Assembly (NCBI RefSeq): GCF_018977255.1
Contig: NW_024704755.1
Span: 15,562,001 to 15,626,000 of the forward strand
Reading direction: 5' to 3'
Source: Callorhinchus milii
Lineage: Eukaryota
DNA length: 64,000 nucleotides
Below the pieces are notes generated by a model, which was not told where the DNA came from, made no database searches, and was given only the letters and a program-made list of their open reading frames with translations. Below are positions 29,330 to 64,000 of this stretch, piece after piece. Within the stretch, counting starts at the first letter, position 1, and each line of letters begins with the position of its first letter. Both the position numbers and the translations under genes were made by a program.

Positions 29330-29440
29330 CTGAGCGTACACAGTCCTCGTCTCTTGTCTTTCAGAGCTTGGAGCTTTCTTGGAACCAGTCAAATTCAATT
29401 TGACATAAGCCACTGGCTGATTCTCTGCTCTGTGTGTCGT
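29330..29440 (-). CDS. Gene 3 exon 6, cassette A (ITIM VAYVKL, TVYAQ)
   Basis: 111 nt, phase 0-0; read-through gives ITSM TVYAQV and a stop at 29243-29245. Confidence 0.82.
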
Positions 29441-34319: not shown

Positions 34320-34631
34320 CTTTATTGGATTCAGAAACAGTGTAGACGGCAACGACTGGAATCCGGAGGGTGATGTGAGATACCAGACAGGTATAAACAG
34401 CCCCACTCTGTACAGGCTGTGTCTCTTCCATAGACCTCGAAGCTTTATAAAGTCCTTTTGAATTCTTTGCTTCAGTGAGATCTATCCCAGTTTTAACTTC
34501 ACTGCCATCTTTATTCCAGGTGAGCGTTACATCTCCCGGGTAGAACTCAGCCGTTTCACACACAAGAGTCAAAGACTTTGATGAATCTCTTTCAGAATCT
34601 CTGGGGAATATCTTCAGTGGGGTTGGGGGGA
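34320..34631 (-). CDS. Gene 3 exon 3, Ig C1-set domain
   Basis: 312 nt, phase 1-1; LVCETAEFYPGDVTLTWNKDG...YTCLVSHITL; closely similar to the gene 2 C1. Confidence 0.92.
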
Positions 34632-36966: not shown

Positions 36967-37272
36967 CATGTACAATTAACTGTGATCCAGTTCCATTTCC
37001 TGCTATTTTTCCCTGAAGGACCACTGCGCAGAGATAGACTCCTGAGTCCTGAAAACTCACGTTTAGGAGCTGGAATGTTTTTGAATCGAATATTTTCTTG
37101 TTGTCGGGTTTTGTATTTAAGTAGTGACTCTCTCCTTGTTTCCACCAGTAAAGTGTTACATATGAACTTTGTTGGATATTGACAGCCCAGCAGGTAAATT
37201 TAACGTTTTCACCTCGTAATGCCGTCTGTGCTTGAGGATGTTGGGTAACTTTCACCGATGCATCACCAGCAA
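36967..37272 (-). CDS. Gene 3 exon 2, VJ-type Ig V domain
   Basis: 306 nt, phase 1-1; VKFTC, LYWWKQ, DSGVYLC, GNGTGSQLIV; lies within ORF 36932-37336. Confidence 0.93.
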
Positions 37273-37382
37273 CTGTCAGGAAATCAATTAACCAATAATT
37301 AGTGATTACACAAATCAAATAAAAGCAATACAACAAACAGAGAGAGGGGAAGAAAAAATAAATAAATAAATAAATAACATAC

Positions 37383-37437: not shown

Positions 37438-40400
37438 TGTGATCAGTTGTTGAGACTCACCCTGAACCAGTTGTTGGTGTAACAAACGTTGCTGACTGTT
37501 TAATAAGAAATATCTCTCAGTGTCGTTTGACTTCCTGAGTCCGTGGTTGAGAGATGGGTTGGTTGTGATTGGCAAAGAAAGGTGTACCTTTCAATAGTAA
37601 TTGGAGCTACTGCTCAGATCAGGACAATGGAGGGTTAAATATTGCCATTATCTGTGTTATTTTTTCTGCATTATTTCTTACTTTTCACAGTAAACATTCA
37701 CGTTCATAATAAGTAACTATAAGAAAATAAAACTGAAATACAGAGCTATGGAAACAACGTTCTCTTCAGAGGATAACACTTGCCTTTGATTTAGCCCCTT
37801 ATCACGTCGTATATACAGTAAAGTGAATCAACTGTACGTTTTGTGGGAGAAACGTAATTAAACAACGGTTAGTTTGTTGTAGCCTAAAACTGATGTTAAA
37901 AAAATGTTTAACATCGGTTTTAGGCTGCACCACGAGAACCTGTCGAAATTAGTGAAAGGACACGGAGTATACCGAGTGATCTTTAAGGCAAACGCAAAGA
38001 TTTGCTTAATTTAAAGCTATGAGCCACTGTATAACATTTCATCTGGAACCTGAGCAGTTAATCCTTGAATGCATTACCATGTTGAATGTCTCTCCATATT
38101 TCATTTATGCAATTCAAAATCATGAATCATGATAATTTCAGCAACAAAACATTATGTTTCAGGTTAAGACAACATTTAGTGAAAGTTTAATGATAGATAT
38201 AATAGAAATAAAATATTTTTTTACAAAGTCTTGTTTATCTCAATTGCTACAATCACGTGAACAGCTTCTCTGATAAATTGAACATGATGAAACACAACTT
38301 ATGAGCAATTGCATGCTTAGTACAGTGAGTTAGAAAACGAAGCACAGGAAATGTCGGTCGCAGAAAAATCTCCAAGAGGATCCCCACATTTAAACCTAGT
38401 GGCAGAGTTCAAACATGGAGTGTCTAGACCTGGGACATTTGACCCTGAGAAGTAATCGCTTTTCAGACACTTGAGATGCAAGCAGAGTGTTTGTCAATTG
38501 TATGGGAATCACTGGGACATCTTCGTGATTTGGGAAAAAAGGATAATAAACGTTGGCCCTCAGAAGTTAATCAGTATGATAGTGATCCATTGAATTAAGG
38601 TCACGACAGAGACCTTATGGTCAACGTAGAGGAGGTTCCAGTGGTCGAATTCAAGGTGGGTGGGCGGGGTGGGGATATTTAGGCAAATGTGAATCAAATA
38701 AAACCCTTTAAAGGGAATGATCCTTGTTGCCTACAATGAACAACTAACATAATTGTAGATTGGATCCCGTCAAACAATAATTTGTTTTAACCCGGTGTAA
38801 TACAATTTCAGTATTCATAAAGCGGTAGTTGACAGTGTGAATGCGAGATTGTCTTAAAATATTCTCGAATTCAAGAGGGGTAACGTTGTGATCCCGCTTC
38901 ACAACTGAAATTGTGAATATATTTATTAACCCATGTAGTTGAAAGCACTATTTGAATTAATAGTGAACAATGTTTATGTAGGCTAGAAAAATGTCAAGAT
39001 GTCTATCATAGCTGAAGGTTGTTGAAGATGTTTTCCATAACACATTCATGTTTTAATTAAGGATTGTGTTAAAGATGAGATAGCTGAAGATGTCATCCAT
39101 AACAAATTCATGATTATGTCAAAGATGTTTTCTATAACAATTCAAGTTTTATAACAATTCATATTCGTCTATAATAATAACAATTCTGCAGGTGTAGTAA
39201 CAATTTTGCAGATTATATTTGGTTATTATTTTATGTCAGGTAATTGCTTCATAGAAATGAAAATGGAAAGATTTTACATTCTCATCCTGACTGTGGAAAA
39301 TTGATTATAAAAGACAAGCTGTATCATTGCAGCTACACTCGCAACTCAAGAATCCAATATGGAATGTAGATTGGCACACAGACAACACACAATTAGACAT
39401 TTCATCTTATCTATTCTCATCTGGGAGGACACATTTTGGCCGTGCTGTTCTTTGAGTGGGCAATTCATTTTGACCCACCGTTGCAGTTCTTTCAGCATTG
39501 AAGTGCAGACAGGCTGTTCTTTGTTTTTCAGTTTCATTTAATGAGCTTTCTTTTGTCTAGCATTTTTACTTATCCTTGAAAGGTTTGATTTTTGTGTAGG
39601 CATCTTTATAATGATAAATTTAAGTGTATAATTTATAATCACTGGAACGTTCTCCCAACATGAAATGTGCATTAACAATGTAATTTTGGTTTTCTTGCTG
39701 TGTCTTAGCTTCATCTGTGTCCTTTATTTTGTTCCCTCCATCAGTTGGCCACATGTGTGCTCTGTGACACAGGTTGCCATAGCGCTACTTTGACTTTGCG
39801 GCCACCAGGTGTAAATGCAGGGAAAAGTGCAATAATGAAATACATTTTAGGTCATAGCTCGTGAACGATAGGAGATAACCAAAAACAAAAATGTCCATGT
39901 CACTCCCAAGTGCAGAACGGCTGAAATCGTTTGAAAAGTAACGGGAGGAGAAGAACAACAGTGTGTTGCAACTACGAAGTAAAGTACCCAGTTTAGCTGT
40001 ACACCATTGATGATTCAAAGGACATGTGTCTGTACTATTGACTGTCTGTTGTATTTGTTGTAATTGAACTCACAAACTTTACATTTCTTATGAAGTAAAG
40101 ATTTTCAAAGCTTGAGTTGCTGAGTGTCTTTGGTGCCTCTGTTCCCGAGTCCTTAATTAAAGGAGAGCTATGAAGGATAAGCTTGTCTTATTCTGCTGAT
40201 TGCCCAGAACCCAACACTACCCGTTGCCAGGAAAGCTGGTTATGGCAGGGACACTGCACGCAATTAATTAGTTTAATTCTATGGAATGAAGATGCTAGTG
40301 AGGGCATTACCAAGGAATGAGGTTGGATGAGCCAAAGAACCTTCTTCATTCGAAAATATCTTATGATCTTGTGAAACTATTATATTTACATATGGTGGTG

Positions 40401-44700: not shown

Positions 44701-46785
44701 GTCTCGCTGGATCTGCTGCCTCACTTACCTAAAGTCAGGGTAGTTATACGTTTTCCACCTAGGGATCTTCCCCCATTCTTCTCCAATCAAGCATCTTAGC
44801 GCATACTCAACATACTCGATCCTTGCACATCCTTTTACCCATGTCTTCTAGATAAGCAGACCCTTTTGAGACAAAGCACCTTGCTCATTATTCTTCAACA
44901 CAGGACATTTTGCTTCTCCCTTCCAAAGCTGGAGCCTGTCTCTGTCTGGTAGAAACATTTATAAAAACCGCAGTCCAACTTAAGTAAGTTAATTAACTCC
45001 AGAGCATCGCTGAGTGATTGCAGAGAACAATGAAGATTGAAAGCTTGGACAAAGAAGACAGAAGACTAAAAGCTAGGAAAAATGGAAGGCTTGATTGCTT
45101 GAAGAACTAACGTTAGCTTGCTGCAACGTTCGGTAGTATTGCTCTGTTTTATTAAGATGGACGTGACTTTTTTTTACACATGTATGCATAATTAAATGTT
45201 TGTTTTGATTAAAACATCCTAAGACTCTGGCCTGTTGGTATTACTGAATCCGAACCTGTTTTGAGTGGTTGCAAACACTCTAACACATCCATCCATCCAT
45301 TTATATGACACAGCTCTTCCAAATGAACCATGCAGACACCCAAAGCATGCAGAAAACGTGTTTATTGTTCGATTCTGATATACAAATCTGTACACCTTTA
45401 ACATTTACTCTCTATTAAAATTGAGCTACTATATATCTAAGTAAACTTATTTTTCTCCACTTAAGCCCACATGCATAAAATAATCTGCACATTTCTGAAG
45501 CAGATGGAGCTATCTGTTTACCTGCAAAACACTTCTCAATTATTAAAAAATGTTAAGGTATCCTAGGGATCTGAACAATAGGAAAATCTGTTACTACAGG
45601 AGATTACCTAATATGAAATTTTGCATCTGTAATAATAGAATCATTGCTTTATAATGTAATTTGTTTTTTTGACAGTTCCACATATGATGGATGAGAGATA
45701 ACATTGTACAGTTGAACGTCGACAAGACAAAGGCTCACCTTCTTGGCTTCAAACAGGGCCTCTCAATGGGCAGTCAGCATCAATTTACAACAACAACAAA
45801 TTATATTTGAATAGATCCTTTCATGTCGGGACGACATCCCAAGACACTGATATAATAATCCTTGCATTTAATATAATGTCTTATCATGTCTTCAAGACAT
45901 CTCAAGTGAGTCACACAATATACTGTAAAGTGCATAGACTGCATATATTTTGTGGGAGAAATGTGGTAGCCAGTAACCACAGCAGTGTCCCACAAACAGC
46001 TGTGAATTTAGCTACCAATTTATTATTATTATTATTATTTTTAAGGGATTATTACCTCGGAAAAGCGACTATCAACTGTGAGTTCCTACTTACTGCTGGA
46101 TAAACAAAAACATATGGAGTAAGGAAACATGCCCAACATTTTGCCATGCCCGGGAATCAAACCCCAGGTCTTCTCGATTGCGAGGTGAATGATCTAACCT
46201 CCAGGACTCCGTGGATGCACATTCCACCTCATGGAGGTGTAGAACTTTGGTGTTGACTCTCAACTGTCCTTTAAACCCCAAATCTGCCTTGATCCGTTCA
46301 GCTGTCCCCCACCTCAGCAACTTTGCTGGCCCTCCGGCCTCCAAGACCCTCATCCATGCTACTATCACTGCTTATTGGAAATGAATCAATCTCTGAAATA
46401 ATTTTGCCAAGTATTTATTAAAGTATGCATTTTGGTAAGTTTCATTTTAGTGATATAATAGCTGTGTTTTTATCTTAGATAAACCATATTTAGGTTTAAG
46501 CACATTATTATATTGATACAGATATTAATGGTTAATTAAAATAATATATACCTGTCAAATATTAGCTTATCCAGACTGAAGCAGGAGGGTTTATTTTCCT
46601 TTAAGCATAATTTGTTGACCGAAAACTAAAATAAAAAACAGACACTGATAACTACAGGTACCTCTGGAAGTCATGGTCGATTAGTGGCGTGATACTGGCA
46701 CATACGTGAATGAACAAAGGCCACGAGGCAAGACCTGCCACTTAAATACGTCAATACTTTGTGTGTGTGTATGGCTCATTGCTTT

Positions 46786-46941
46786 CTAGAGACAGTCTCT
46801 GTTGCTCCTCTGTAGCTTTTTCATCTGTATTTCTGCATACTCTGTATTCTTGTCATTGTGATTAAGCGTTGCTGTTTTCTTGGAGCCAGACAAATCTAAA
46901 GCAGCATAGGTCACTTTGTTACTGGATGTCCCCTGTTTGGT
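46786..46941 (-). CDS. Gene 4 terminal exon (ITIM VTYAAL, ITSM TEYAEI, stop)
   Basis: ttttacag| acceptor, 51 aa then TAG. Summed exons give 1101 nt, a 366-aa open frame. Confidence 0.87.
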   Translation of the reverse strand, partial: TKQGTSSNKVTYAALDLSGSKKTATLNHNDKNTEYAEIQMKKLQRSNRDCL

Positions 46942-47810
46942 CTGTAAAATCAATGTTTCCCAATATCATTAGTTCAAGTGTGACTAATATAATAGCTTGA
47001 CCGAAACTAGTGGATCAATTTGTAAGCATTTGTAGTCATGCCTTAGCCTCATTAATGGTGACCCATATTATTCATAATTTTGAAGGGTTATGATAGAGTA
47101 ATATATTATCTCTATTATTGTGCAATAAAAAGTAACCAGAGGGAACAAAGTTAAGATAATCACACAAAACAATTCAATGGATGTTAGAAAAAAATCTTTG
47201 TTCAAAAGATGGTTTGAGTATAGAATTTTCTGCCGCAACCCGTAGTGGAAGCAGAGACCATGAATATTCTTAAACGGAAATGTTTAAATAGATAAATGAG
47301 TGACGACATCAATGAGTGGGGAGAGTAAGCAGAAAAATGTCATGTATGTATGTTTGTAGTTTTGTTTGTAGGTAGTATGTATAATGTATGAACGTATGTA
47401 ACTCACATTCAATAATTATTATGATTAGATTATCCCATGCTGAAAAAACACAAGGGCAAATTTGACGAAACGATTGACCTGTTTTGGAGTGGTAACATTT
47501 TGTGATATGTGAAGTCCCAGTGGTGCTACTCTGCTGCACTTGTCGCTTAACATGAGGAATGGGCATTTGGGTAAATAATGAACGATTGCTCAAAGTATTG
47601 CAACACTGTGGTTGCAAAATCGGTGGTTGAGGTGGGCGTGTGAAAATTTTGAGAAGCAAGTAAGAATGTTTAGGAACAATTGTCCCCTACAATCAAGTAT
47701 GCAAAGCCTGTTGAAAATTATTTATTGTACTTAGATTAGTGAAGTATCCAAAAATCGGTTGGATGAAAGTGATTTGTGTCTTGGTTTTCGCGTGTTTTGT
47801 AAATCTTTAC

Positions 47811-47921
47811 CTGGGCATATACTGTCCTCTCCTCCTGATGCTTGGGTTTTCCAACTTTTTTAGAACCAGTTAAATCCAATGTGGCATACACCATCCTCTC
47901 AGCATCTGCTTCCATCGCAGT
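47811..47921 (-). CDS. Gene 4 exon 6, 111-nt cassette (MVYATL ... TVYAQ)
   Basis: Phase 0-0, aacag| acceptor, CAG|gtaaag donor; read-through would stop at 47736-47738. Confidence 0.85.
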
Positions 47922-48358: not shown

Positions 48359-48396
48359 CCGTTTTCCGGGGCAGTCCGTTTCATTTGGTATCACGC
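48359..48396 (-). CDS. Gene 4 exon 5, cytoplasmic linker GVIPNETDCPGKR
   Basis: 38 nt, phase 1 to 0, ttcag| acceptor and strong G|gtaagg donor. Chosen on phase and splice strength; not homologous in sequence to the gene 2/3 linkers. Confidence 0.62.
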
Positions 48397-49127
48397 CTGA
48401 ACCTAACCATGAATATAATTAAAATCAATCAATGAAATATTTATTCTTTTTTCATGCTCCGTAATTTCAAAGATATTTGGAGGTTCACTCAACATAAAAT
48501 CGAACATAAAGCTTCAATACACAGTTATATACATAGTACATGTTTCTTCTATACACATTTGGCATTTATTTAAGCGCTGTATTTAAGGTTTCCAAGACGG
48601 TACTCGTGTGAATGGTCCTGTATTAATGCAAGTTGTTCTTCTTGTTGTTATTGTTGTATTGGATTATTTAAAAGTTCATCTGATTCAAACGCTTTCTGTC
48701 CCAGGATTACAATCCGCTGCCTATCTAAATCTTCCCTTTCACAATGTTTACCTCGCAAGTTCAGCGTCCCATAAAAAAAAAAATAATAATCCCTGCATTT
48801 GATATAGCACTTTTCACGTCGGGTGGATGTCCCAAAGCACTTCACAGAACACACTGTAAAGTGAATTGACTGTATATTTGTGGGCGAACGATAAGAAATA
48901 CACCTTGATTTACAGTGCGCTTTATTCTACTTGTTCAGGTTTGTGGCTCCTGCACTTTGGGACTGGTCCCTTCACTCCCTTTCAGAATAAAAACAAGCAA
49001 TAATCGAGGTCTATCATAAAACTGTGTCTTCAACTCTATGTCCCGGGATGGGGTGCTTTTACTCGCTGAATAATTTCTACTGATATTAAACTTTTAATAT
49101 GAGTAAAAAAAACAAATGATTTCTTAC

Positions 49128-49241
49128 CTTTCCGTTTCTTTAGTCTGCATCCGATTGCAAAAAGGATGAAAATAACCAATAATGCACACGCACCACCTGC
49201 ACATCCAGGTGCAAGTAAATTGTTTGTCCAATCACCGATCC
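49128..49241 (-). CDS. Gene 4 exon 4, transmembrane exon
   Basis: 114 nt, phase 1-1: GIGDWTNNLLAPGCAGGACALLVIFILFAIGCRLKKRK; uncharged TM span. Confidence 0.9.
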
Positions 49242-50090
49242 CTACAAAGGACAGAATAACCTAAGGTGGTGAAACCGACACCTTCTAGAGCGAGTCTTCC
49301 ATCATAGAGTATGTTGCTTGTTCTGCAAAGCAGAGAGACTAAAAGTTGAAGCAATTTGCTGCAACTCTAATTGCCCAAATAATAATAATAATCATAATAA
49401 TCATTGCATTTGATATAGTGCTTTTCACATCTTCGAGACATCCCAAAGCGCTTAACAGAATGTACTGTAAAGTGAATTGACTGTATGTTTATGGGCTAAA
49501 CGCTGCAGGCAATTGCACATAGCAGTGACCAACAAACAGTCATGGATTGAAGTGACCAATTTTTTTTTCTTGAGGGATTATTATCATGTGCGTGGAGTCG
49601 CCCAATGTTTTGCACTGCCGAAAATCGAACCCAGGTCTCTCACTTGCAGAGCGAGTGCTCTAACAACTGAGCTACAGCACACCTACACGTCAGGAAACGA
49701 TTTCCACAACACTATGCTCCAACCAATGAATCTAAATTTAGTGATTGTATTGCTAAAGATATTGCATCTTTGTTAAACCGGAAACAACATCGACCTTGTT
49801 TATTGTGGCAATACTTTGCAGAAATGTTTCAGTAAAAAAACGTAATGTAATCTTAGCTTCATTGTACAACAGACTTGTCCGTGAAGTGATTCTAAAATGT
49901 ATATATTTTTGTTGATAAACATGAGGCACGCCACAGCATCAATATTCAAATACGTATACTTTATATAATGATAGCATGTTTCCATGACATCAATAGTGTA
50001 CCTATAATTTCCAACACGGATTAATACTAGACACCAACCCCGTCACAACTTACCTATCATATAATAATTCTAAGATTGTTGGCGACCTAC

Positions 50091-50402
50091 CTGTGTGAGG
50101 AAGCAAAACCGTATAGTTGGCAATCCCTGGATTCTGGAGGCTGACGTGAGATACCAAACAGGTATAAACATCTCCACTCTGAACAGGCTGTGTCTCCTCC
50201 AAATAACTGTGAGCTTTAAACAATTGCCCGGGATTCCTCTGCTCAGTGATAGTATTCACTGTTGTAATTTCTATGCCATTTTTATACCAAGTGAGGTTGA
50301 GATTCTCCGGGAAAAACTCAGCCGTTTCACACACAAGAGTCAGAAATACAGACAGATTTCTTTCGGGATCCATGCGGGAAATCGCCAGTGGGGTTGGGGG
50401 AA
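50091..50402 (-). CDS. Gene 4 exon 3, Ig C1-set domain
   Basis: 312 nt, phase 1-1; VPPTPLAIS...LVCETAEFFPENLNLTWYKNG...YTCLVSHVSL; donor AG|gtaggt. Confidence 0.92.
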
Positions 50403-51607
50403 CTGTAGAACAGATAAAGGGGTAGAATCATGATGTTACTTTGGGGGAATAAACCTTATTCTGATTTCTATTTCCAATTTTCTGACAGTCGAGAAGACTT
50501 GGAGGATTGTAAATCGTTGGAAACCTTTATAGCTTTTGGGGGGATGTTGATGTGCACATATCGGTGCCCTATTTGCCTACAAATATAATTATGAAGCCTT
50601 TGGAGACTGTCCAGGACGTGATTCTGTGCCATATCAATTGCAGTGACTATTATTGCTATTTAACCCACCAATGCAGCCCTGGGGAGGCTGATTTTTGGTG
50701 GGGATATCAACATCGAGGACACATTGAATCTGCCTCTTTGGTGCATGCGTAAGTTCCCACAGCATTTTTGGAAAAGACAAGGGATTTCTCCCCGGGTCCG
50801 GCCAAGAATTCCCAGATAAAAAATGGTCATTTACCTCATAAATATTTTTGGAACATTGTTGCTGACAATTGGATGCCGGCTTCGCGTACAAAAGCCACTC
50901 GTTTATACAACAATTCATGCCGATGTGAAAGGCGTCAAAAAATATATCATATGTGTTATTATTATCATTAGTAAGCCAAATGCGCCAATATCTTCCATAA
51001 ATTGTACAAATTGGGCCAACTACTGATTGAAGGCAATTAAATTACATATTTAAAATCATGGGACATTTATCTTGTGGATACTTCAAATTAAATTATCTAT
51101 ATTTTAAACTGGGGGGAAAAATTAATGCAAGGTGAGGATCTTAAAGTTTCAGAGACTGCAAATCAGTTAGAGGGTACCGAACGGTTACTGCTGGAATAAA
51201 CTGATGAGGGAGACATCACATTCCTTCCAACATGAGGAAATTCTAAAATCGTTTCTAATTATATTTAGTGTATTTGGTGTATTTAAGTTGAAAAGGGACG
51301 GACGTATATGCCATTAATGCTCAGATATGTCACATCATAAAACATGATCCATAATATTATATAACGGTGAATTTCGGCGGGCGGCAGTTTGAATTGTGCA
51401 CAATTGTGTAATAAAAAAAATTATTCGGATTTTGCAGCGTAACTATATTTCTTTCCCCAGAGAGGGAACATTACCATTAATTTGCAGAAAATGACATTGA
51501 AGAATACCACTGTAAATGTAACGAAAACAATATAAAAGATTCCGAAACATTTGTTTGCGGGATATTTCAACATAGGAACAGTCTCTATATCCATATCATT
51601 CACTTAC

Positions 51608-51928
51608 CGTACACGATTAAACGCGATCCATTTCCATTTCCTACTTTTTTCCCCTCTAACACCAGTTCGCAGTGATAGACTGCAGCATCCTGAATATTCA
51701 CATCCAGAAACTGGAAGAAGCGATTTCCTTTACTTTTAACTCCAAACCGTTTCCTGCTATCCTCTTGTGTGTGCAGGTATGTCGTCTCTCCCTGCTTCCT
51801 CCAGTACACTTGGATACGTGAAGAGTGTAGAGAGAATGGATAGCCGCAGTAGAAGGTGATGTTTGTTCCTCTGTTTGCCGTCAAGTATTCAGGGAATTGA
51901 GTAATTTTAACGGAAGTATCACCAAAAA
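51608..51928 (-). CDS. Gene 4 exon 2, VJ-type Ig V domain (subfamily II)
   Basis: 321 nt, phase 1-1; ITFYC, VYWRKQ, DAAVYHC, GNGNGSRLIV. Confidence 0.94.
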
Positions 51929-52198
51929 CTATCAAAAATGAAATATTGATGTATATTAATATGGACAAGTGGGTAGGAAAGCAAAAAAAATTAAATTAGA
52001 CAAAGATACATACAGACACACTGAGAGTAAGTCAGTAAACTGTGTTTATACCGAAACTACTCAATAATAATAATAATCCTTGCATTTGACATGGCGCCTT
52101 GTCACGTTTTCTCAAAGCGTTTCACAAAATATACTGCAAAGTGTAGTGGCAATCTACTTTCATTGCTAAATAAACTGGGTGATAGAGCAATCACTTAC

Positions 52199-52247
52199 CC
52201 GTGGAAATAATCACCAGGACACACAGGTATAACAAAGGACTCAACAT
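52199..52247 (-). CDS. Gene 4 exon 1, leader MLSPLLYLCVLVIIST(G)
   Basis: 49 nt, phase-1 donor G|gtaagt; hydrophobic signal peptide. Confidence 0.9.
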
Positions 52248-52328
52248 AATTCTAACCGCCTGGTGCTGCTGATCTGAATGTTGCTGGACTGTAACAAGCG
52301 TTTGCAGATTGATGTGAAGTACATCCTG

Positions 52329-52345
52329 TGACGTTTTACTTCCTC
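52329..52345 (-). promoter_or_regulatory. GAGGAAGT (PU.1/ETS-like) plus ACGTCA (CRE half-site) upstream of gene 4
   Basis: Motif match about 90 bp upstream of the ATG; function untested. Confidence 0.45.
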
Positions 52346-54779
52346 TCTCTTTAGAAAAGGCCAATTGATTAATAGATTGTCGCGATTTACACTGAAACAG
52401 TGGCTTAGAATTGTACCGACAAAAGCAAGGGAAGTGTGCAGAGAAAATGGTGAACGAAGATAAAATGTATCCGAAGTTCAGGTTTCAAAATAACTTTTTA
52501 CTTCCTGAACCAGCATGTTGTCTCATGCACTAAACCCTGTTGTTTCCCAATGTAGATTCTGGGATGAATTTTATGACACATCTATTTACTTTACAGTTCC
52601 TTCATACTTCACTCTACTCTTATTATACACAACAAAAAGAAAATGCCAAACCTACTATTATTTACCGTATATCTATTTAATCGGCAGAGTTTTAAGAGAT
52701 TTTGTTTTATTAAATAATGATTTATTGAAGTTAATGTGTGAGACTAAAAGTGCAGCTGTGTATCCATATAAACAGTTTACATACATTCAAACTTGTATCT
52801 AAAAGATGGAAAACTGCGTATTATTGATTGATAATAACGGACTATAAGCTGTGCACAGTCTAATATATCAGTAGTTCACGCGGAGACTACATATTTCTCC
52901 CACGGAAGGTTGATGGTGCAGGAAGCTAATCATTGAGGAGAGTATTGTGTCAGCCCGGTTCAGTTACGAGCAGTATCGCCTCTGAATCGGAGAGTTGTAA
53001 ATTCACCACCACTACATAAGAACTCTAAGTTCACAGTCTAGACATACAAGAGCAATATATTTTAATATATTGTTGTTGATTTCACGATATCGATGCAATG
53101 CTTACTGTGTCTAGATCAGTTATTACTGTGTACATTTATGAAGACTGTGACTGCTTGCCATGTATTGCATAAAAGTACACAATGTTATTTTGGAAATTAT
53201 TGATCATATGCCCAAACCTGGAGCACCAGGGCATTGAAGTCGCAGTAATTTAGAGAGTTTATCTGCTGGTGTTTTTTGTGGATCTGTTCACTACAAAACA
53301 CAGTACATTTCCAATTTGCCCGAATGTGGACGGTACAAATAAAGACGAATTAACAGTTAAGAAGACTTAACAATTTACATACTATTGATTTACGGCGTAG
53401 TTTTATATTGAATCGCGAGGTCAATGTAGAGATTTTAGATTCCGTCTTCGTGGCCATGTCTATCTGTTTCACTTTGTGCAACTTGGAAGGAAGCCATTTA
53501 ATTAGTCACAGAGCATATTTATATTTAGAGTTATAGCAAATTGTGAATTTCAGTCCTATCAATTGCGGTAAACCAAATTTGCTATTTTGTATTGACGGCA
53601 AAGATATTCTCTTTATACACAAATAAAGCAAATTGCAGACCAGAGGGAGTAATAGCGTCACAAACTTGGAGAGGCAAGCCTTTGGGTTGTATCAGAGGGC
53701 CGGAGCCCATGTGCAAAGATCAAGCCTCCAGATGTCGCTCTCTCTCTTTCTCTGGGGCTCCAGGAAACAGACCAAAGATCAAGCCTATGGCAAATGGATG
53801 GCCTGGTGGTTTGGAGCAAGGTGGATGGTGAAAATGAATGCTTGTAAGAGAGATTGTAAGACACCGATGTGCACCCCTCCCACCCCACTTAAGCCGCCCC
53901 TCTTGGATTGTGTCGTGTAAAGAAATGTGCCATAACGCTGTTGGGCTGCTAAGGTTTCCCTCCTGTTCTGATAAAACTGTGATGCTTTAACCATGCCCCT
54001 TATATACCAGTCAGAACTTTTCTTATAAACTATTTTGCAAGTAAATATGTACTCCCTGTAGCCCTGAAGTAAAAGTTCCCCTTTGGAATAGGTTGAGATA
54101 AATAGTGAAAAAGTATCAGAATTCTCTATGTTTAATCTATCTGTGTTGGTCTTGGATAAGAGTTGAACTCTTAGTCAGGTATCACCTAGCAATGGTTGTT
54201 GGACCCGAGAGTGTGATAACTACAAGAACGGGCACTGGCAGTCAAGATTAAATTTAATTCTAACGATTTTTCTCTTTACAGTTGTTGTAAAGTCGTTTCC
54301 AATGTATTAAGCATTATAACCATTATTTCACTCAATAATTATTTCACTTTAAATAGTTACAATGTCATGAAAAGCAAAACCCTATTTCATGATTATACTG
54401 TTCAATATAAGGCACCACCTTATCATCTTGTCGACGCCTCTCAATTTGCTTCACGGGATATAAAAATATTGTCATACTAATTTCAAGTGCTTTGAGATGC
54501 CGACGTGAAGGGTGCTATATAAATGCAAGTTGTTGCTGTTCACAAATATTAGTTCTGATCGACCTATTATGCAATACACGGCAGTGGGGTAAAGAGGAGA
54601 ACGTAAAGGTGAAAATGGAAACGTAAAATTGATAAGAGTATAGTTCACATTTAGCCATCATTTCTAGTAATACTCACACAAAGTGACCCAAGATTACAAT
54701 GCACTTTTTCCCCTGACTCTTCCTACACATCAACAAAGGCAATTTTAATGCCCAATCAAGAATTTTGGAAAATATTAAC

Positions 54780-55190
54780 AAGAACAATAATAAAATTACA
54801 TTTCTATCGCACCATTCTTGTCAGGAAGATGTCCCAAGGGGCTGCACAGAAAGAGTTTTGGACACAAGTTGGGGGTTGGGGATGGGGAGTATAGAGGGCA
54901 AGGGGGGAAGCAGGGAGATCGAAAGCACGGTCAAATAGGAGGGTCTTCAGATGGGTCTTGAAGGAGACAAGGGAGGGGGCGAGGCAGAGGGACTGCAGGA
55001 TGGAGTTCCAGAGAGTGGGGGCAGAGTGGCCAAAGGCCCACTCACCAATATTAGGGCAAGCAAGGCGGGGGACGTGAAGCAGGCCTGAGCCCACTGAGCG
55101 GAGGGAGCGAGCAGGATGGTAGGGGATTACAGGGTCGCAGAGGGGTAGGAGGAGGTGACCGTAAGCACGGTCAAAGAGTAAAGTCTTCAG
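54780..55190 (-). mobile_element. L2 3' fragment
   Basis: GLLHVPR...AFGHSAPTLWNS...FKTHLKTLLF. Confidence 0.82.
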
Positions 55191-56974
55191 CTGTGATCTA
55201 CAAGGTGGAGTGAAGCCTAGCTAGGACTGGTGTGATGGGGTTACTGAGTTTAGTGTCAATGAGATTACAGGCTTTGGAGTTTTTAATCATTTAGCTTGTG
55301 GGTAGTGGAGAATGGTGAGAAGGGCATTTGAGTAGTCAAGGTACGAGGTGGCTAAGGCATGGAGAGGGTTTTCTGCTAACGTGCGGGTGAGGTACCATCC
55401 AAAAAGTTCAAATAATCCATAATTCAGCTGCTCCTACCCACACCCACACTAAATTGTTATGTATCACCCCAATCCTCACCAAGCTCTACTGGCTCATTGT
55501 CTTAGAACGGATCAACTTCAAGGTCCTCACCCTCACATATGAAATCTTTCACACATTTTGAAAGGTTTCAGATGCTCCCGGATTCACACCAAAATTTAGT
55601 AATTGTGTAATTTGTAGGCTAAGGTATAACAACCAACAATTAAACAATTCAAAAACAACTCAGTTAAATTCCAATAAAAGAAATGCAATTTTCAAATAAA
55701 ATAAGTGTAAAAATATTGAATAGGTACTGTGGAATAATGATACTGCAGAATGTTCAGTTGCTGATCAGTCTTCCATTTGAACTACGAGTACAATAAAGCT
55801 AATATTCCTTGCATTTGATATAATAAAAATAATAATATCCTTGCATTTGATATAGCATCTTATCACATTTTCGAGACGTCTCAAAGTGCTTCACAGATAT
55901 ACTGTAAGCTGAATTGGTTGTATACGTTGTGGGTGAAACACGGCAGCCAATTGCGCTCAGCTGTGTCCCACAAACAGTCGTGGATTGAGTGACCAAATTA
56001 TTATTATTTTTAATTTTTTAGGGACTTTGTCAATATATTTCGAAACTTTCATATGATATATTGTAAAGTCGTAATGCTGCGGATATTTTATAGGTGAACA
56101 CGGACGCCAATTTGTAAACTGCCATGTCCCACATACAGCAATTGATGGCCAATTTTATTGGGGAGACTGTTAGCCAAGTCACCGATATCAATTATTTTCT
56201 CTAAGTATTGTTAACATGTTATTGTGAGTATATCTCGAATGACCCAAAAACGTTATTCACAAGAAAATATACATATATAATAAGGTTGAGCGTGCACCAG
56301 TAAATAGCTACAACTCAAGCATCTAGCCCTCCACGAGATTATATTACCCACTAACCAATCATACGAGATCCTTACAGCAACACGTGTATGCAGAAAAAGT
56401 ATACCATACATGTGACTACCGAGTTATCAGATTGTATGCATTGGTTTTCCGAGATAATTCAAAGTAATGTTTGATGGGAAACTGCAAGTGATTAAAGCAC
56501 AAGCAGGTGCTAAGTGTAGTGTACAGACAATCGTCGTAACTAGAATTAAATCGGGGACACACAACGTTACCACGCTAGCCAATCCTGTTATCAAATTTTG
56601 TCAAAATAACAGAACGTTACAGCGCAAAAATAGCCAATTCAGCGCAACTGATTCCTGCCGATACTCCATAAATTACCTAACCTAATCACTTCTCCCTCAC
56701 GTCTGCACCAAACTTCCTCTTAAATATGTTGTGCTTCAGCCACAATTTCCATCATGAGATCCACATTCTCACCAGCTTTTGGGTAATTGAATTGGGAAGC
56801 GTTTTGGATGCATTTAAGTTCACAACTGTTCTGAAAGTCGCACCAACCACATCAAATTATTTCCCGAGCTGACAAAGGCAGAAGGTCAAAAGTCATCGCA
56901 ACTTATTCATTTTTGGCAATCGCCAACCTTTGTTGCAGACAGCAATGGGTTCAGATGAGTCCCAAAATTGCCAT

Positions 56975-57368
56975 TTATTGCATTTATATATGTCAACCGG
57001 AATACCACCAAAAACTATAACAAATTAAATATCGATGTATGTTATATGGACAAATGGTTAGCGTAGCAAGTATTCGGAGAATTAAGTTATGTTGATCGAG
57101 GTACGGATCCATTAGAGAATAATTACAAACTACTAGGGAGAGGATGAAAAATTGAGCAAGAAACAGAGAAGTACCGAGAAGAGATAACGAATACGTTGGT
57201 GTATGTGAAACAATACATTCAATGTATACAAATGGAAGTTACCATCTCTTATTTGGTTGCTAAACAGACTGAAAGATACATCCCATTGTTTTTTTTAAAA
57301 AAAAACACATATAAACTGAATGCACACCTGTGGAAATAAACTCCGGAATCACATGCACAGCGCAACAT
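56975..57368 (-). pseudogene. Relic leader plus start of V exon of a subfamily-II gene at the palindrome centre
   Basis: The ATG at 57368 to ...ATTTCCACAG|gt at 57328 is 41 nt, against 49 nt in gene 4 (frame broken). 56990-57070 matches the gene 4 V acceptor region (tag|TT TTT GGT G) and then loses homology. Confidence 0.6.
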
Positions 57369-60300
57369 TTGCTATTATTCTGTTCATTTATCGGGACTGG
57401 TTTAAACCCTTTGCTGCTCTGCAACCCAAGGGTTGTCGATTGCCAAATATGAATATGTGGCTTTGAAGTTTGATCTCCTCCCTTTCTCGGTTCAGGAAAT
57501 AATTGTGTGTGGTTGGTGCGCTTTGTCGAACAATTGTGAATTTAGATAAACCGGGATTCAATCACTGGGGTAACAGATTAGCTGTAATGTTCAAATTAAA
57601 CAACAACAAATTAAATAGGTACAGAGTCTCAAATACAGTATTTATTCTAATTTGCTGAACTTGCGTTTTGATTTATGCATCCAAAACGGTCCCCAATTCG
57701 ATTATCTCAAAGGCAGTGAGAATGTGGAACTCACTGACGGAAGCTGTACATATTTTAACAGGAAGCTTCATGCAGCCAAGAGGGAGAAGGGATTTGAGAG
57801 GGGTGATTTCGCGAGTATAAAGAGTGACAGGAATTATTTGCTCTGAATTCGCTGTTTCTGCATGTAATGTTCTATGTTATTATACATGACAACATTTGAT
57901 AAAAGGATGGGTTAACATATGAGTGTTGTATGTATGCGATTCAGTTCTAATTACATGTTTTTCTGTACATTATACTTGACACATAAAATCGGCTTGAGCG
58001 TTAATCACTTGCACTCTCACTTCAAATTGATTCAGAAGACCAATGCATACAATCTGATAGGTCGGTAGTCACTCGTACAGTGTACTTTTTTTGCAGGCAC
58101 ATATCGCTGTAAGGATATCGTATGACTGGTTAGTGGGTGATAACCTCATGGAGGGCTAGACGCTTCGGTTGTAGTTGCTTGGTGAAAGCTAAACCATGTT
58201 ATTTATGTATAGTTTCTTGTAAATAACTGTATTGGGTCATTGGAGATAACATCGTAATAAGTAAGTGAAAATAATTTATACTGGTGGCTTGGCCAACAAG
58301 CTCCTCAATAAAATTGGTCAATCCATTCCTGTGTGTGGGACATGGCAGTGTACAAATTGAAATCCATGTTCACCCACAAAACAGCCACAACATAACTACC
58401 TTACAATATATGATTCAAAAGAGTGCGAAAAGCCTCATATATGAGGGTGAGGACTTGAAGTTGATCTGTTCGAAGACATTGAGACATTGAGCTTCGTGAG
58501 GATTTGAGTGACATGCAATAGTTTAGTACTTGTGCAGTTAGGAGTGGTGGAATTCTGGATTAGTTGAACCTTGTGGATGGTGAAACTGAGGAGATCAGCG
58601 AGAAATACATTTGAGAAGTCCAAGACGGAGATACAAAGCATGGTTCAGAATTTTGCTGTTGAATTCCAGTATGAAGTAGAAGCAGATGCCGTCAATTTGA
58701 TGGAAATGAAGTAAAGCAGCCTTGATTAGGGAATGAATATGAATTAGGAAGGACACCTGAGAATGGAACCAGATGTCAAGGTTGAGGACTCGTTTGGTGA
58801 GTTTGAGGAATAGGCGTGGAGGCTAAGGCAGTCAGAACCAAGGGAACTAAGGAAGTTTGCTTCCATCTTGTCCATGTTGAGTTGCAGAGGGTTGGTGCTC
58901 ATCCAGACCTTAATGTCTAATCAGCAGACAGACAGCACATTAGTGGGCCTGGTATTGCTATTGGAAGTAGAAAAGTAGATTTAGGTGTCATTTGCATAAC
59001 TCTGGAAGATAACCCCATTTCTGTGGATGATGTTGCCAAGAGGAAGCTATAATCCAAGTTTGCAATGCAAGGGAAAGCCTCAATCAAAATCCATTCATAC
59101 TAAATTCTGTACCCCAATCACACCAGCCCTAGCTTCTGTCCATCTTACCCCCTCCTTCCGCTCTTTTAGATCACAACTGAAGACCTTTCTCTTCGACTTT
59201 GCATAAAGTTAACCCCCCCCCCCACCACCATGCTCAGCGTCAGGCTTCAACATGTTTAAGCGCTCCGAGATGCTGCCCTATATGAAGGGTGCTATATAAT
59301 GCAAATTGTTGTTGTAGATTTGCCTGGTTCAAAAAACAGCAATATAATGACAAGAATAAGGAATATATTATGACATACTGCACTTATTTAAAGTGAAATA
59401 ATTACAGAAAATATAACGCTTGCAATGCTTAATACATTGACAACTTTATGCTCGGAAAAGCGGATAATATTAGTAGACAACTGTAAAAACAAAAGTCATT
59501 GGAATGAAATTTAATGATCACCGCTCGTGCCCGTTAATGTACTTATCACACTCTCGGGTCCAACAACCATCACTGAGTGTTACCCAACTAGCAGTTCAAC
59601 TCTGAACCAAGGCCAACACAGACAGATTAAACACATGGGATTGTGATACCTTTTTAGTGTTTATTTCAATCTACTCCGAAATGGAACTTTTACTTCGGCT
59701 TAGCCTTTGGTCTGCTTAATAATAATAATAATAATAATACTTGCATTTGATATAGTGCTTTTCACGTCGGGAGGACGTACCAAAGTGCTTCACAGAACAC
59801 ACTGTAAAGTGAATTGACTGTATATTTGTGGGCGAACGCGGCAGCCAATTGCGCACAGCAATGTCCTACAAACAGTCGTAGATTGAAAATGACCAATTTT
59901 TTTTATTATTGTTTTTGGTTTTTTCGAGGGATTCCTAAAACAGCAGAAAGAAAACAAGAGAGTGAGAGAGAAAGAGCGACCTCTGGGGGCTTGATCACCC
60001 CTTTGTTGCACACCGGCTCTGGCCCTCTCTGATATCCAAAGCCTTTGTTTCCAATTTTGCTACACTAATACTTCCACTGTTCTGCAAATTGTTTATTTGT
60101 GTTTATGTAGTAACTTTCTTGGCAACAAAAAATAGCAAAATTCGTTTACCACAACTGATAGGACTGAAATTCAGAATTTGTTTCTAACTCTAAATATAAA
60201 TAGACTCCATGACTAATTGAATGGCTTCCTTCCAAGCTGCACAAAGTGAAACAGATAGATATGGTGACGTTGCCAAAACATAAAAACTCCTCATTCACCT

Positions 60301-61140
60301 CATGATTCAATGCAAAACTATACCATAAATCAATAGTGAGTCAATTGTTAAGTCTTCTTAATTGCTAAATCGTCTTTATTTGTACCGTTCACATTCAGGC
60401 AAACTGGAAATGTATTTTGGAGTGAATAGATCCATAAAAAGCAGCAGCGGATAAATTCCTTAAATTACTGCTTCTACAATGCCCAGGTGCTACAGGTTTG
60501 GGCATATAATTAATATTTTCCAAAATAACATTGTGTACTTCTATGAAGTACATGCCAAAAGATTTGGAGTAAATGTCAAGCAGCAAATGCATGTTTTCAC
60601 AAATGTGAACAGTTGTAACTGATCTACAAATCTCAGCATTGTAGCAATATTGTGAAATCAAGAACAATTTATTGTAATAGATTGCTCTTGCCTATCTAGA
60701 CTGTGAACTCTGAGTTCTTATGTGGTGGTCACAAATTTAGAACTCACTGATTCAGAGGCGACACTGCCTCTAACTGAACCGGGCTGACACAATACTCTCC
60801 ACAATGAATAGCTTCCTGCACCAACCTTCCGTGGGAGAAATATGCAGTCTCCGCGTGAACTACTGATATATCAGATTGTGCACATTTTCGGGCATGATCG
60901 ACGTGCTTGAAGAGATGATTTATGATGAATAATGCAGTTCTGCATAGTTTAGATAAAAAGTAGAATGTATGTAAACAGTGTTGATCTTGCACTTCACCTC
61001 ATGAAATGTGAAATGCAATTTCCTGCTGCATTTCACTCACAAATTATGCAGTCAATTCACTCTACAGTACATTATGTAAAGAGATTCAGGACTTCTCGAA
61101 GATGTGATAAGGTTCTATGTCAAATGAAAGGATTATTATT

Positions 61141-62054
61141 AATACATCCTTATTTAATAAAATACAATATCTTAAAAATCGACTGATTAAATAGTATACG
61201 GTAACTAATAGTAGGTTTGACTTTTGGTTTTATTCTGTGTAATAAGGGTACAGTCAAGTATGAAGAAGGAACTGTAAGGTTAGTAGATTAGTAGTAGTTT
61301 CTCTACATTGGGGAACAACTTCCTTCAGTGCATTAAGCAACATGCTGGTTCAAGAAGCAATGGTTATTTTTAAAAAAGAAAAAAAAAAGAAATATAGTTA
61401 CGCTGCGAAATCTGAATAAAAAATATTATTATTTTAAATTGTGCGTAATTCAAACTGCCACCCACCTAAATTCACCCTCATATAATAATATCGATCATGT
61501 TTTATGATTTGACAACTCTGATCATTAATGTAATATAAGTCCGTCCCTTTTCAACTTAACTACACCAAATACACACATTTATAATCTGAAACGATTTTAG
61601 AATTTGCTCGTGCTGGAAGGAATGTGATTTCTCACTGTTCAGTTTATTTCAGCAGTAACCTTTCGGTACCCCACTACTGATTTCTAAAAGTTTAAGGTTC
61701 TTAATGTGTACAATTATTTTTCCAGTTTAAAATATAGATAAATTATTAATAATTAATAATTAACTAATTAATAATTAGTAGATGAATAATTATTAATTGA
61801 TTAATTAATAATTATTAATTAATACATCCTTATTTAATAAAATACAATATCTTAAAAATCGACTGATTAAATAGTATACGGTAACTAATAGTAGGTTTGA
61901 CTTTTGGTTTTATTGTGTGTAATAAGGGTACAGTCAAGTATGAAGAAGGAACTGTAAGGTTAGTAGATTAGTAGTAGTTAATCTACATTGGGGAACAACT
62001 TCCTTTAGTGCATTAAGCAACATGCTGGTTCAAGAAGCAATGGTTATTTTTAAA
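61141..62054 (+). repeat. Near-identical 234-bp direct repeats (61141-61374 and 61821-62054) enclosing a copy (61386-61745) of gene 5 intron sequence 63150-63510
   Basis: Direct string comparison. Confidence 0.9.
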
Positions 62055-62283
62055 CCTGAACTTCGGATACATTTCATCATCTTTCAGCGTTTTCCCTACA
62101 TATCTCTTTTGCTTTTGCCGAAACAATTCTAAGCTATTGTTTCGGAGTAAATGGCAACTGCCTACTAATCAATTGGCGATTCCTAAAGAGGGAGTCAAAC
62201 GTCACAAGATGTACATCATATCAATCTGCATATGTTACAGACCAGCAACAGCTTCAGATCAGTCGCACCAGGTGATGAAAATT

Positions 62284-62332
62284 ATGTTGAGTCCTTTGCT
62301 TTTCCTGTGTGTCCTGGTGATTATTTCCACGG
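62284..62332 (+). CDS. Gene 5 exon 1, leader MLSPLLFLCVLVIIST(G)
   Basis: 49 nt, G|gtaaga donor; inverted paralogue of the gene 4 leader; an in-frame upstream ATG lies at 62275. Confidence 0.88.
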
Positions 62333-62675
62333 GTAAGAGATTACTCTATCATCCCGTTTATTTAGCAATGAAAGTAGATTGAGTAGTTTCAGTTTAAACA
62401 CTCCAGTTTACAATAACAATAAAATTACATTTGTATAGCGCCTTTCTCAAGTCGCTGGAGTCAAGTCAATGTTTCACACCTGAGCTGGGGGTCAAGATCG
62501 GGGAGTGTGGAGTGCAGGGGGAGAAGGAGTGTGATCGAAGAATGGGTCTTGAGACGGGTCTTGAAGGAGTTTACTGATATACTCTCAGTGTGTCTGTATG
62601 TATCTTTGTCTAATTTAATTTTTTTTTGCTTTCCTACCCACTTGTCCATATACATCAATATTTCATTTTTGATAG

Positions 62676-62996
62676 TTTTTGGTGATACTTCCGTTAAAAT
62701 TACTCAATTCCCTGAATGTTTGACGGCAAACAGACGAACAAACATCACCTTCTACTGCGGCTATCCATTCTCTGTACACTCTTCACGTATCCAAGTGTAC
62801 TGGAGGAAGCAGGGAGAGACGACATACCTGCACACACAAGAGGACAGCAGGAAACGGTTTGGAGTTAAAAGTAAAGGAAATCGCTTCTTCCAGTTTCTGG
62901 ATGTGAATATTCAGGATGCTGCAGTCTATCACTGCGAACTGGTGTTAGAGGGGAAAAAAGTAGGAAAAGGAAATGGATCGCGTTTAATCGTGTACG
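62676..62996 (+). CDS. Gene 5 exon 2, VJ-type Ig V domain; remaining exons lie beyond the window
   Basis: 321 nt, phase 1-1, open; 6 nt differences from the gene 4 V exon. Confidence 0.92.
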
Positions 62997-64000
62997 GTAA
63001 GTGAATGATATGGATATAGAGACTGTTCCTATGTTGAAATATCCCGTAAACAAATGTTTCAGAATCTTTTATATTGTTTTTGTTACATTTACAGTGGTGT
63101 TCTTCAGTGTCATTATCTGCAAATTAATGGTAATGTTCCCTCTCTGGGGAAAGAAATATAGTTACGCTGCAAAATCTGAATAAAAAATATTATTATTTTA
63201 AATTGTGTGTAATTCAAACTGCCACCCACCTAAATTCACCCTCATATAATAATATCGATCATGTTTTATGATTTGACAACTCTGATCATTAATGTAATAT
63301 AAGTCCGTCCCTTTTCAACTTAACTACACCAAATACACACATTTATAATCAGAAACGATTTTAGAATTTGCTCGTGCTGGCAGGAATGTAATTTCTCACT
63401 GTTCAGTTTATTTCAGCAGTAACCTTTCGGTACCCCACTACTGATTTCTAAAAGTTTAAGATTCTTAATGTGCACAATTATTTTTCCAGTTTAAAATATA
63501 GATAATTTAATTCAAACTATCCACAAGATAAATGCAATTTAATCGCCTGCAATCAGTAGTTAGCCCATTCTTGCGAATTTTATGGAAGATATTGGCGCAT
63601 TTGTATTATTCATGATAATAATAATAATACGTTTGATATATTTCTACTCATTTCACATCGACATGTATTGTTGTAAAATTGAGTGGCTTTTGTACGCGAA
63701 GCCGGCACCCAATTGTCAAACAACAAAGTTCCAAAAATATTTATGACATAGATGACCAATTTTTATCTGGGAATTCTTGGCCGGACCCGGGGAGAAATCC
63801 CTTGTCTTTTCCAAAAATGCTGTGGGAACTTACGCATGCACAAAGAGGCAGATTCAATGTGTCCTCGATGTTGATATCCCCACCAAAAATCAGCCTCCCC
63901 AGGGCTGCATTGGTGAGTTAAATAGCAATAATAGTCACTGCAATTGATATGGCGTAGAATCACGTCCTGGACAGTCTCCAAAGGCTTCATAATTATATTT

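Follow-up and report, generated by a model that had tools for sequence, protein, structure and literature searches.

An inverted pair of receptor genes in the elephant shark

The 64-kb stretch of DNA analyzed here (the window; it contains no N) comes from Callorhinchus milii, the elephant shark, a holocephalan, and holds no fewer than five clustered, related receptor genes, each with a VJ-type variable (V) domain, a C1-set domain and a transmembrane (TM) segment. Our subject is two of these, gene 4 and gene 5, which face each other head-to-head, about 10 kb apart, on opposite arms of a large inverted repeat. Gene 4 is encoded on the minus strand, as are genes 1 to 3, and gene 5 and the next gene to its right are on the plus strand. 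Sequence to the right of the window was read from record MU249845.1 of assembly GCA_018977255.1 (L003 in Table 1), of which 29.4 kb were taken from window position 48640 onwards. The record is identical to the window across the 15.4-kb overlap (48640-64000), and positions above 64000 are window coordinates continued rightward through it. The spliced product of gene 4 corresponds to XP_007902825.2 (P0033, 368 amino acids) and that of gene 5 to XP_007902898.2 (P0031, 302 amino acids), both annotated on MU249845.1.

Table 1. Features of the inverted gene pair, in window coordinates.
Feature	Position	Strand	Content or size	Basis
Gene 4 last coding exon	46789-46956, approximate	-	canonical ITIM VTYAAL and ITSM TEYAEI	tblastn, motif scan
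Gene 4 cytoplasmic exon	47811-47921	-	TAMEADAERMVYATLDLTGSKKVGKPKHQEERTVYAQ; ITIM-like and ITSM-like tyrosines (...MVYATLDL...TVYAQ)	
Gene 4 small cytoplasmic exon	48359-48403, approximate	-	SGVIPNETDCPGKR	tblastn of P0033
Gene 4 TM exon	49128-49241	-	uncharged LLAPGCAGGACALLVIFILFAIGC; outside palindrome	
Left arm	49383-56968		~7.6 kb; gene 4 upstream region, leader, V, C1; ends between C1 and TM exons	self-BLAST, MAFFT
tRNA-Ala-derived SINE, outer end of left arm	49383-49681	-		Rfam tRNA, 48.5 bits; repeat-family alignment
Tract 2, left	49467-50860		C1 exon, 456 bp of intron 2, 624 bp of intron 3, most of SINE	
Gene 4 C1-set exon	50091-50402	-	312 nt; identical to gene 5 C1	splice sites, Pfam
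Tract 1, left	51421-52041		V exon, 187 bp of intron 2, 113 bp of intron 1	
Gene 4 V (VJ-type) exon	51608-51928	-	321 nt	splice sites, Pfam V-set/Ig_3
Gene 4 leader, coding part	52199-52247	-	MLSPLLYLCVLVIIST + 1 nt	sequence read; XP_007902825.2; GT donor 52198-52197
Non-homologous central spacer	56969-57385		417 bp	no alignment; innermost high-scoring segment pair 56815-56968 vs 57544-57386
Right arm	57386-65199 (L003 16560); in-window part 57386-64000		~7.8 kb, 1.2 kb of it beyond window	self-BLAST
Upstream exon of NCBI gene 5 model	58640-58711	+	no alignable left-arm mirror	tblastn of P0031
Gene 5 leader, coding part	62284-62332	+	MLSPLLFLCVLVIIST + 1 nt	sequence read; P0031 mapping
Tract 1, right	62568-63183			
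Gene 5 V (VJ-type) exon	62676-62996	+	321 nt	sequence read, exon comparison
Tract 2, right	63721-65114 (L003 16475); in-window 63721-64000			
Gene 5 C1 exon	64179-64490 (L003 15540-15851)	+		
SINE mirror copy, outer end of right arm	64900-65199 (L003 16261-16560)	+		repeat-family alignment
Gene 5 terminal exon	67956-68068 (L003 19317-19429)	+	3.5 kb beyond C1	
ITIM and ITSM, immunoreceptor tyrosine-based inhibitory and switch motif; SINE, short interspersed nuclear element.

A preliminary description of the window, made by eye, had proposed an inverted repeat with arms of more than 6 kb that were 75-85% identical and carried many indels. The computed alignment bears this out: the background identity of the arms is 79.8% (726 differences in 3,587 alignable ungapped columns, corresponding to a Jukes-Cantor (JC) distance of 0.236), and large indels are numerous. 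A copy of a tRNA-Ala-derived SINE forms the exact outer end of each arm (ARAGORN tRNA-Ala calls at L003 971-1042, minus strand, and 16261-16332, plus strand), and the boundary of duplication or conversion thus coincides with the SINE tail. Because the homology of the arms ends at this element, between the C1 and the membrane exons, the 3' parts of genes 4 and 5 are unrelated. Further copies of the tRNA-Ala SINE are scattered through the cluster at 45852-46040, 48771-48890, 55820-56018, 59717-59916 and 61014-61139.

Against this diverged background, two tracts are nearly identical. A tract of ~620 bp over the V exon, with 6 differences in 321 nt of exon and a sharp drop at 51421/63183, had been noticed before and was recovered to the base (tract 1; 15 differences in 615 columns, 97.6% identity). 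Both of its edges are sharp (51420/63184 and 52042/62567), with ~82% identity on either side. The accompanying notion of a homogenized V exon holds in so far as this tract is real, but homogenization is not confined to V, as a second tract over the C1 exon is even closer (tract 2; 27 differences in 1,393 columns, 98.1%). With 1.4 kb, tract 2 is more than twice as long as tract 1, it includes all 312 nt of the C1 exon, in which the two copies agree at every position (tblastn 100%), and it harbors a perfectly identical run of 493 bp (49987-50479). JC distances in the two tracts are 0.020 and 0.025, versus 0.236 elsewhere. The 42 differences that the tracts hold together are spread along them; a cluster of nine at 50480-50534 within tract 2 hints at mosaic repair or at a second, older event. 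The island of ~560 bp between the tracts (50861-51420) shows ordinary divergence (82.3% identity), and the region of the leader exon is likewise only 82% identical.

At the protein level, the six differences between the V exons translate into four replacements in gene 5 relative to gene 4 (Y>C, G>R, L>V and N>K) and one silent codon. Y>C and G>R fall into the A'/A'-B region, L>V into the loop resembling complementarity-determining region (CDR) 1, and N>K into the CDR3-like loop. From the initiator methionine to the end of C1, 223 of 228 residues are identical between the two proteins, and the mature ectodomains differ at 4 of ~210 positions.

The right arm additionally contains an internal partial tandem copy (61141-61374 vs 61821-62054, 98.3%; 61386-61745 vs 63150-63509, 97.8%). 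This copy, at 61141-61745, lacks 1.1 kb comprising the leader exon, intron 1 and the V exon and may be viewed as a 'V-less ghost'. It is of the right-arm type and 85% identical to the left arm. Its divergence of ~2% equals that of both near-identical tracts, so that a single complex rearrangement episode is conceivable.

Membrane anchors and tails of gene 4 and gene 5

Downstream of the C1 exon, gene 4 continues with a TM exon whose membrane segment, CAGGACALLVIFILFAIGC, contains no charged residue, followed by the cytoplasmic exons with ITIM- and ITSM-type tyrosines. A tblastn search detected no exon encoding an arginine-containing TM segment (Arg-TM) near gene 4. Judging from these motifs, gene 4 is a candidate inhibitory receptor that would recruit SH2 phosphatases.

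Gene 5 is built differently at its 3' end. Its C1 exon had been predicted to lie about 0.2-0.5 kb past the end of the window and was found 179-490 bp past it. The terminal exon encodes GVDGKLYEFAICRFALCICVILLLVIVTVDHFRITSL followed by a stop codon; read together with the junction residue, the sequence is G-VDGKLYEFAICRFALCICVILLLVIVTVDHFRITSL-stop. It comprises a hydrophobic segment of 21 residues, FAICRFALCICVILLLVIVTV, with Arg at the fifth position, and a tail of just eight residues, DHFRITSL. The acceptor of this exon is a strong polypyrimidine/AG site in phase 1, which fits the C1 donor, and the stop codon is TAA. A motif scan of the terminal exon revealed no ITIM, ITSM or ITAM (immunoreceptor tyrosine-based activation motif), and no relic of an ITIM-type TM or tail exon was found between gene 5 and the next gene. 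An uncharged TM with a full ITIM tail, which would have spoken against an activating partner, is thus not what gene 5 encodes. Rather, gene 5 is a candidate activating partner that may signal through an ITAM-bearing adaptor with an acidic TM residue.

A full HMMER scan with gene 5 detected a terminal segment of the form R-x(16-20)-[IVF][DE]H-[FVLA] as a module shared within the family. The basic residue stands at about the fifth position of the hydrophobic stretch, whose inner end is marked by [IVF]-[DE]-H-[FVLA]. Carriers are the C. milii protein P0010 as well as proteins of Heterodontus francisci, Chiloscyllium punctatum, C. plagiosum, Scyliorhinus canicula, Carcharodon carcharias and Heptranchias perlo. 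These relatives all came from the HMMER scan; a region-restricted protein search with the last 48 residues of gene 5, which is subject to a word-index limit, returned nothing. In sharks, 14-40 further cytoplasmic residues follow the module, which argues for a true TM anchor rather than a glycosylphosphatidylinositol (GPI) signal. The holocephalan and shark lineages split about 400 million years ago, and the most plausible reason for a buried charge to be kept across the holocephalan-elasmobranch split is a partner within the membrane, namely an adaptor. The annotated genes of the elephant shark include CD3 chains (PMC6795676). In the catshark S. canicula, the gene of one Arg-TM relative (LR744038.1:81271449-81313871, designated L004) has the same exon order, with V at 10181-10561, C1 at 14599-14901 and Arg-TM at 16188-16301 of that segment. 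No inverted paralogue was found within 10 kb of it, which neither supports nor contradicts a generalization to other species.

The pair displays the features by which paired receptors are recognized in sequence: linked, near-identical ectodomains, of which one is joined to an uncharged TM with ITIM and ITSM, and the other to a basic TM residue with a short, motif-free tail. We consider it probable that genes 4 and 5 arose by an old inverted duplication, that their ectodomains were converted, and that they form a candidate inhibitory/activating pair, the last point having been surmised before the right-hand sequence was read. Opposite signaling, a shared ligand and expression are what we infer for the pair.

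Several observations weigh against this reading. As for gene 5 itself, the NCBI model XP_007902898.2 places 38 residues in front of the signal peptide and is therefore doubtful at its 5' end. In an older-assembly model, P0002, a GGG>GG change shifts the reading frame where C1 ends, and the TM is missing. The V domain has gained an unpaired Cys through Y>C. Exact look-ups of the spliced product gave the genome record alone, and those of older-assembly models and of N-terminally trimmed products gave no transcript-derived contig. With respect to the adaptor, a survey from 2014 reported no FcR-gamma homologue in shark genomes (PMC4016189), and our search with human FCER1G, which is limited by word indexing, gave no cartilaginous fish but tetrapods only among the matches listed. 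As for the evolution of the pair, no signal of selection on the V exon (ratio of nonsynonymous to synonymous substitution rates) can be claimed, and no diversifying selection either, because there are only six exon differences (about four replacement and two silent). The direction of conversion and the number of events would need an outgroup, the comparison being between the two arms only.

The gene 5 observations could be taken to mean that gene 5 is decaying, represents a null allele or yields a secreted decoy, and that conversion merely refreshes its first exons from a functional gene 4. P0002, which after its frameshift runs into the intron and stops without a TM, would fit this idea, as would the odd N-terminal extension, the new Cys, the lack of a retrieved transcript and the location of the V-less partial duplicate, after the putative 5' exon and ahead of the leader. 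However, all four coding exons of gene 5 are open in the current assembly, with canonical splice sites and matching phases. The frameshift affects a homopolymer, a change typical of older sequencing chemistry; it reflects either a sequencing error or a null allele. Moreover, the terminal exon is of a TM type whose Arg and DH are conserved in seven cartilaginous-fish species, which is unexpected for a dead exon. The upstream exon that supplies the N-terminal extension is probably a 5' untranslated exon with a fortuitous ATG, a view based on the 38 residues that precede the signal peptide. We therefore regard decay of gene 5 as unlikely, although of all alternatives it keeps the most weight.

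Even if intact, gene 5 might act as a decoy that competes for the ligand of gene 4 without signaling, provided that its hydrophobic C-terminus is a GPI-attachment signal or a plain anchor. The very short tail, the C-terminal position of the hydrophobic segment and the reported absence of FcR-gamma would be compatible with this. Yet the homologous segments of sharks carry longer, charged cytoplasmic tails, which a cleaved GPI signal would not keep, and the Arg and Asp/Glu-His are conserved in position across the lineages compared. We regard this explanation as improbable.

Origin of the near-identical tracts

Identity along the arms is far from uniform; uniform identity would have spoken against conversion. 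The contrast between tracts and background is highly significant (Fisher p=3e-100), and the longest identical run measures 493 bp, whereas permuting the mismatch positions 5,000 times gave no run longer than 93 bp (p<=2e-4). The mosaic pattern of identity, the intron flanks of the tracts and the permutation test support the earlier proposal that gene 5 is a conversion partner of gene 4. The diverged island of 560 bp separating the tracts calls for two events, unless a single one was repaired patchily. Conversion, rather than double crossover, is the mechanism that we infer. An alternative donor is not apparent within the window, where no other paralogue is close and the remaining V exons reach at most 50% protein identity.

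Palindromes with tracts of more than 98% identity are difficult targets for assembly, and collapse of haplotypes or paralogues, or a chimeric join within the palindrome, could mimic conversion. The C1 exon of gene 5 also differs between the old and the new assembly (H/Q plus the frameshift). On the other hand, the sequence is free of gaps, divergence of the arms amounts to 20% outside the tracts, and the 42 differences inside them are spread out. Furthermore, two assemblies made years apart yielded separate models of gene 4 and gene 5: the older, independent models (XP_007902825.1 and XP_007902898.1) reproduce all four replacements in the V domain. An assembly artefact thus appears unlikely.

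Purifying selection alone, keeping exons alike without any transfer of sequence, is hardly credible: both tracts are centered on coding exons, but intron makes up about two thirds of their sequence (1.37 of 2.0 kb) and is 97.4% identical (36 differences in 1,374 columns) compared to 82.3% in the intron between the tracts (94 in 532) and 82% outside them, the leader-exon region is merely 82% identical, and the tandem paralogues genes 2 and 3 attain at most 89% across the region of their C1 exon. Selection on coding sequence cannot explain such a pattern, and the data point to gene conversion between the inverted arms.

Genes 2 and 3 are tandem duplicates lying in blocks at 14-23 kb and 27-38 kb of the window. 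Their alignments range from 74 to 89% identity without any tract of at least 97%; the best block pairs 19579-20369 with 34222-35026. Within the window, strong homogenization is therefore specific to the inverted pair. A direct repeat of 634 bp (32105-32738 vs 39499-40132, 97.6%) flanks the 5' half of gene 3.

Combining these data, we propose the following history. An old inverted duplication within an elephant-shark cluster of non-rearranging VJ-C1 receptor genes would have given rise to gene 4 and gene 5. The copied segment, or its surviving part, would span ~5 kb of upstream sequence, the leader, V and C1, and stop at the tRNA-Ala SINE. The two genes would consequently differ at their 3' ends: in gene 4, an uncharged TM exon is followed by three exons for a cytoplasmic tail with ITIM and ITSM; gene 5 closes with a single exon for a TM helix that has a buried Arg and for an 8-residue tail. 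The arms would then have drifted to about 80% identity, before at least two intrachromosomal, non-reciprocal transfers overwrote the ectodomain exons together with their intron flanks, 0.62 kb over V and 1.4 kb over C1. Judged by the JC distances (0.02 vs 0.24), the last transfers may fall into approximately the latest tenth of the interval elapsed since the duplication.

Family context and comparison with known receptor systems

The genes of the cluster follow a common plan of leader, V exon with a germline J-like motif, C1-set exon, TM exon and, for the cytoplasmic part, several small exons that contain ITIM/ITSM-like tyrosines. The J-like motif of the V domain reads G-x-G-S-x-L-x-V. Pfam assigns V-set/Ig_3 to the V exon of the gene 4 product and C1-set (E=2e-15) to the following domain. 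The best protein matches are C. milii XP_007902825 and XP_007902898, with relatives among sharks and rays, and the family looks like an expansion of cartilaginous fish. Among solved structures, sequence comparison places shark UrIg2 first (9dmx, E=1.6e-14), then SIRP-alpha/gamma (2wng, E=1.8e-13) and antibody light chains. An AlphaFold model of the V-C1 ectodomain is confident (predicted local distance difference test scores of 80-97). Used as a Foldseek query, it retrieved antibody light chains exclusively, which confirms the V-C1 fold but does not discriminate families.

NCBI has labeled genes of the cluster automatically as 'SIRP-alpha-like' (gene 4), B7-H6/'NCR3LG1-like' (gene 5) and 'tapasin-related-like'. 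These are similarity names only, and they are misleading. No B7-H6 entry was among the 60 best solved-structure matches listed, which were UrIg2, SIRPs and antibody chains. The genes being already present in NCBI under such names, the gain of our analysis is interpretation, not gene discovery.

As regards the remaining members of the cluster, the next gene to the right of gene 5 starts at 77628 on the plus strand and encodes an ITIM-bearing protein of 406 amino acids. Gene 3 (34303-37282, minus strand) is represented in NCBI by a product of 229 amino acids (P0012) that stops soon after C1 and lacks a TM, and ITIM-type exons lie downstream at 27300-29440; P0012 represents a secreted isoform, or else its model is incomplete. 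A weak tblastn match to an Arg-TM exon in gene 3 (30011-30061), considered as a possible relic, was unconvincing when the DNA was read and was dropped. V-like exon remnants with in-frame stops at 7751-8005 and 23688-23819, both on the minus strand, suggest that the cluster also includes pseudogenized family members.

Paired receptors whose ligand-binding exons undergo conversion have been reviewed (PMC3533184). The genomic logic of genes 4 and 5 appears closest to the CEACAM pairs of Xenopus and to SIGLEC5/SIGLEC14 and SIGLEC11/SIGLEC16, and their domain architecture is nearest to SIRP-alpha/beta. In Xenopus, ligand-binding exons of CEACAMs were converted between oppositely oriented inhibitory and activating paralogues (PMC5112662). 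As in our case, ITIM-bearing and activating-type paralogues (ceacam301/303, 350/351/368) share one cluster in opposite orientation, and the exons of the ligand domain were converted recently amid diverged flanks, in a non-mammalian species (PMC5112662). However, CEACAMs represent another family of the immunoglobulin superfamily, with a CEACAM N domain and no C1-set. Their conversion stops at the splice sites, while the tracts of genes 4 and 5 include intron sequence (0.3-1.1 kb) and extend over both ectodomain exons. Also, the activating CEACAM partners of Xenopus bear ITAM or ITAM-like tails of their own instead of a charged TM.

In SIGLEC5/SIGLEC14 and SIGLEC11/SIGLEC16, the N-terminal domains are homogenized by gene conversion. 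Like genes 4 and 5, these are inverted neighbors, one with ITIM and the other with a basic TM residue and a short tail, and Siglec-5 and Siglec-14 have been described as paired receptors (PMC4042635). Siglecs, by contrast, combine V-set with C2-set domains, bind sialic acid and employ DAP12 on the activating side. Genes 4 and 5 have neither the Arg motif for binding of sialic acid nor a C2-set domain, and the family is unrelated to Siglecs.

SIRP-alpha and SIRP-beta1 share with our pair the order of a V-set followed by C1-set, with ITIMs in the inhibitory member and a short tail plus a basic TM residue in the activating one. SIRPs are, however, defined by a V-set and two C1-set domains. Pfam, the exon map and the structural model agree on a single V-set and a single C1-set domain in our genes, and because of its single C1 domain gene 4 falls outside the SIRP definition. 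The similarity is distant, with low sequence identity (2wng, E=1.8e-13). SIRP-beta1 also uses Lys and DAP12, whereas gene 5 has Arg near the outer end of its TM and the conserved Asp-His at the inner end.

UrIg and UrIg2 are non-rearranging VJ-C1 proteins for which conversion among domain exons has been reported in cartilaginous fish (PMC12227049). Shark UrIg2, the best solved-structure relative, resembles our genes in its germline-joined VJ-type V domain followed by C1. In contrast to genes 4 and 5, UrIg is secreted or associated with the extracellular matrix, contains multiple C domains and lacks partners with ITIM or charged TM. Conversion there takes place among the repeated C exons of one gene and not between an inhibitory and an activating gene. 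Neither the UrIg nor the major histocompatibility complex papers mention genes 4 and 5. In the searchable literature, we found no paper on this VJ-C1 family or on converted paired receptors in any chimaera or shark.

In mammals, converted ligand-binding exons in paired receptors typify the arms races between hosts and pathogens. The elephant shark pair provides a clean, gap-free example from a lineage at the base of jawed vertebrates, with an internal clock given by the 24% divergence of the arms versus 2% in the tracts. Its VJ-C1 ectodomain is of a type discussed as related to the precursors of antigen receptors. The conserved Arg...DH module makes the question of how cartilaginous fish build activating innate receptors experimentally concrete. 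As a tentative extension, for which we see a possible but less than even case, the pair may belong to an ancient paired-receptor system present throughout cartilaginous fish, characterized by a VJ-C1 ectodomain, a shared activating TM module with Arg and Asp/Glu-His, and an adaptor other than FcR-gamma. If this is true, such a system would involve a new signaling partner, and the pairing of inhibitory with activating receptors, along with its upkeep by conversion of the ectodomains, would predate the split between cartilaginous and bony vertebrates.

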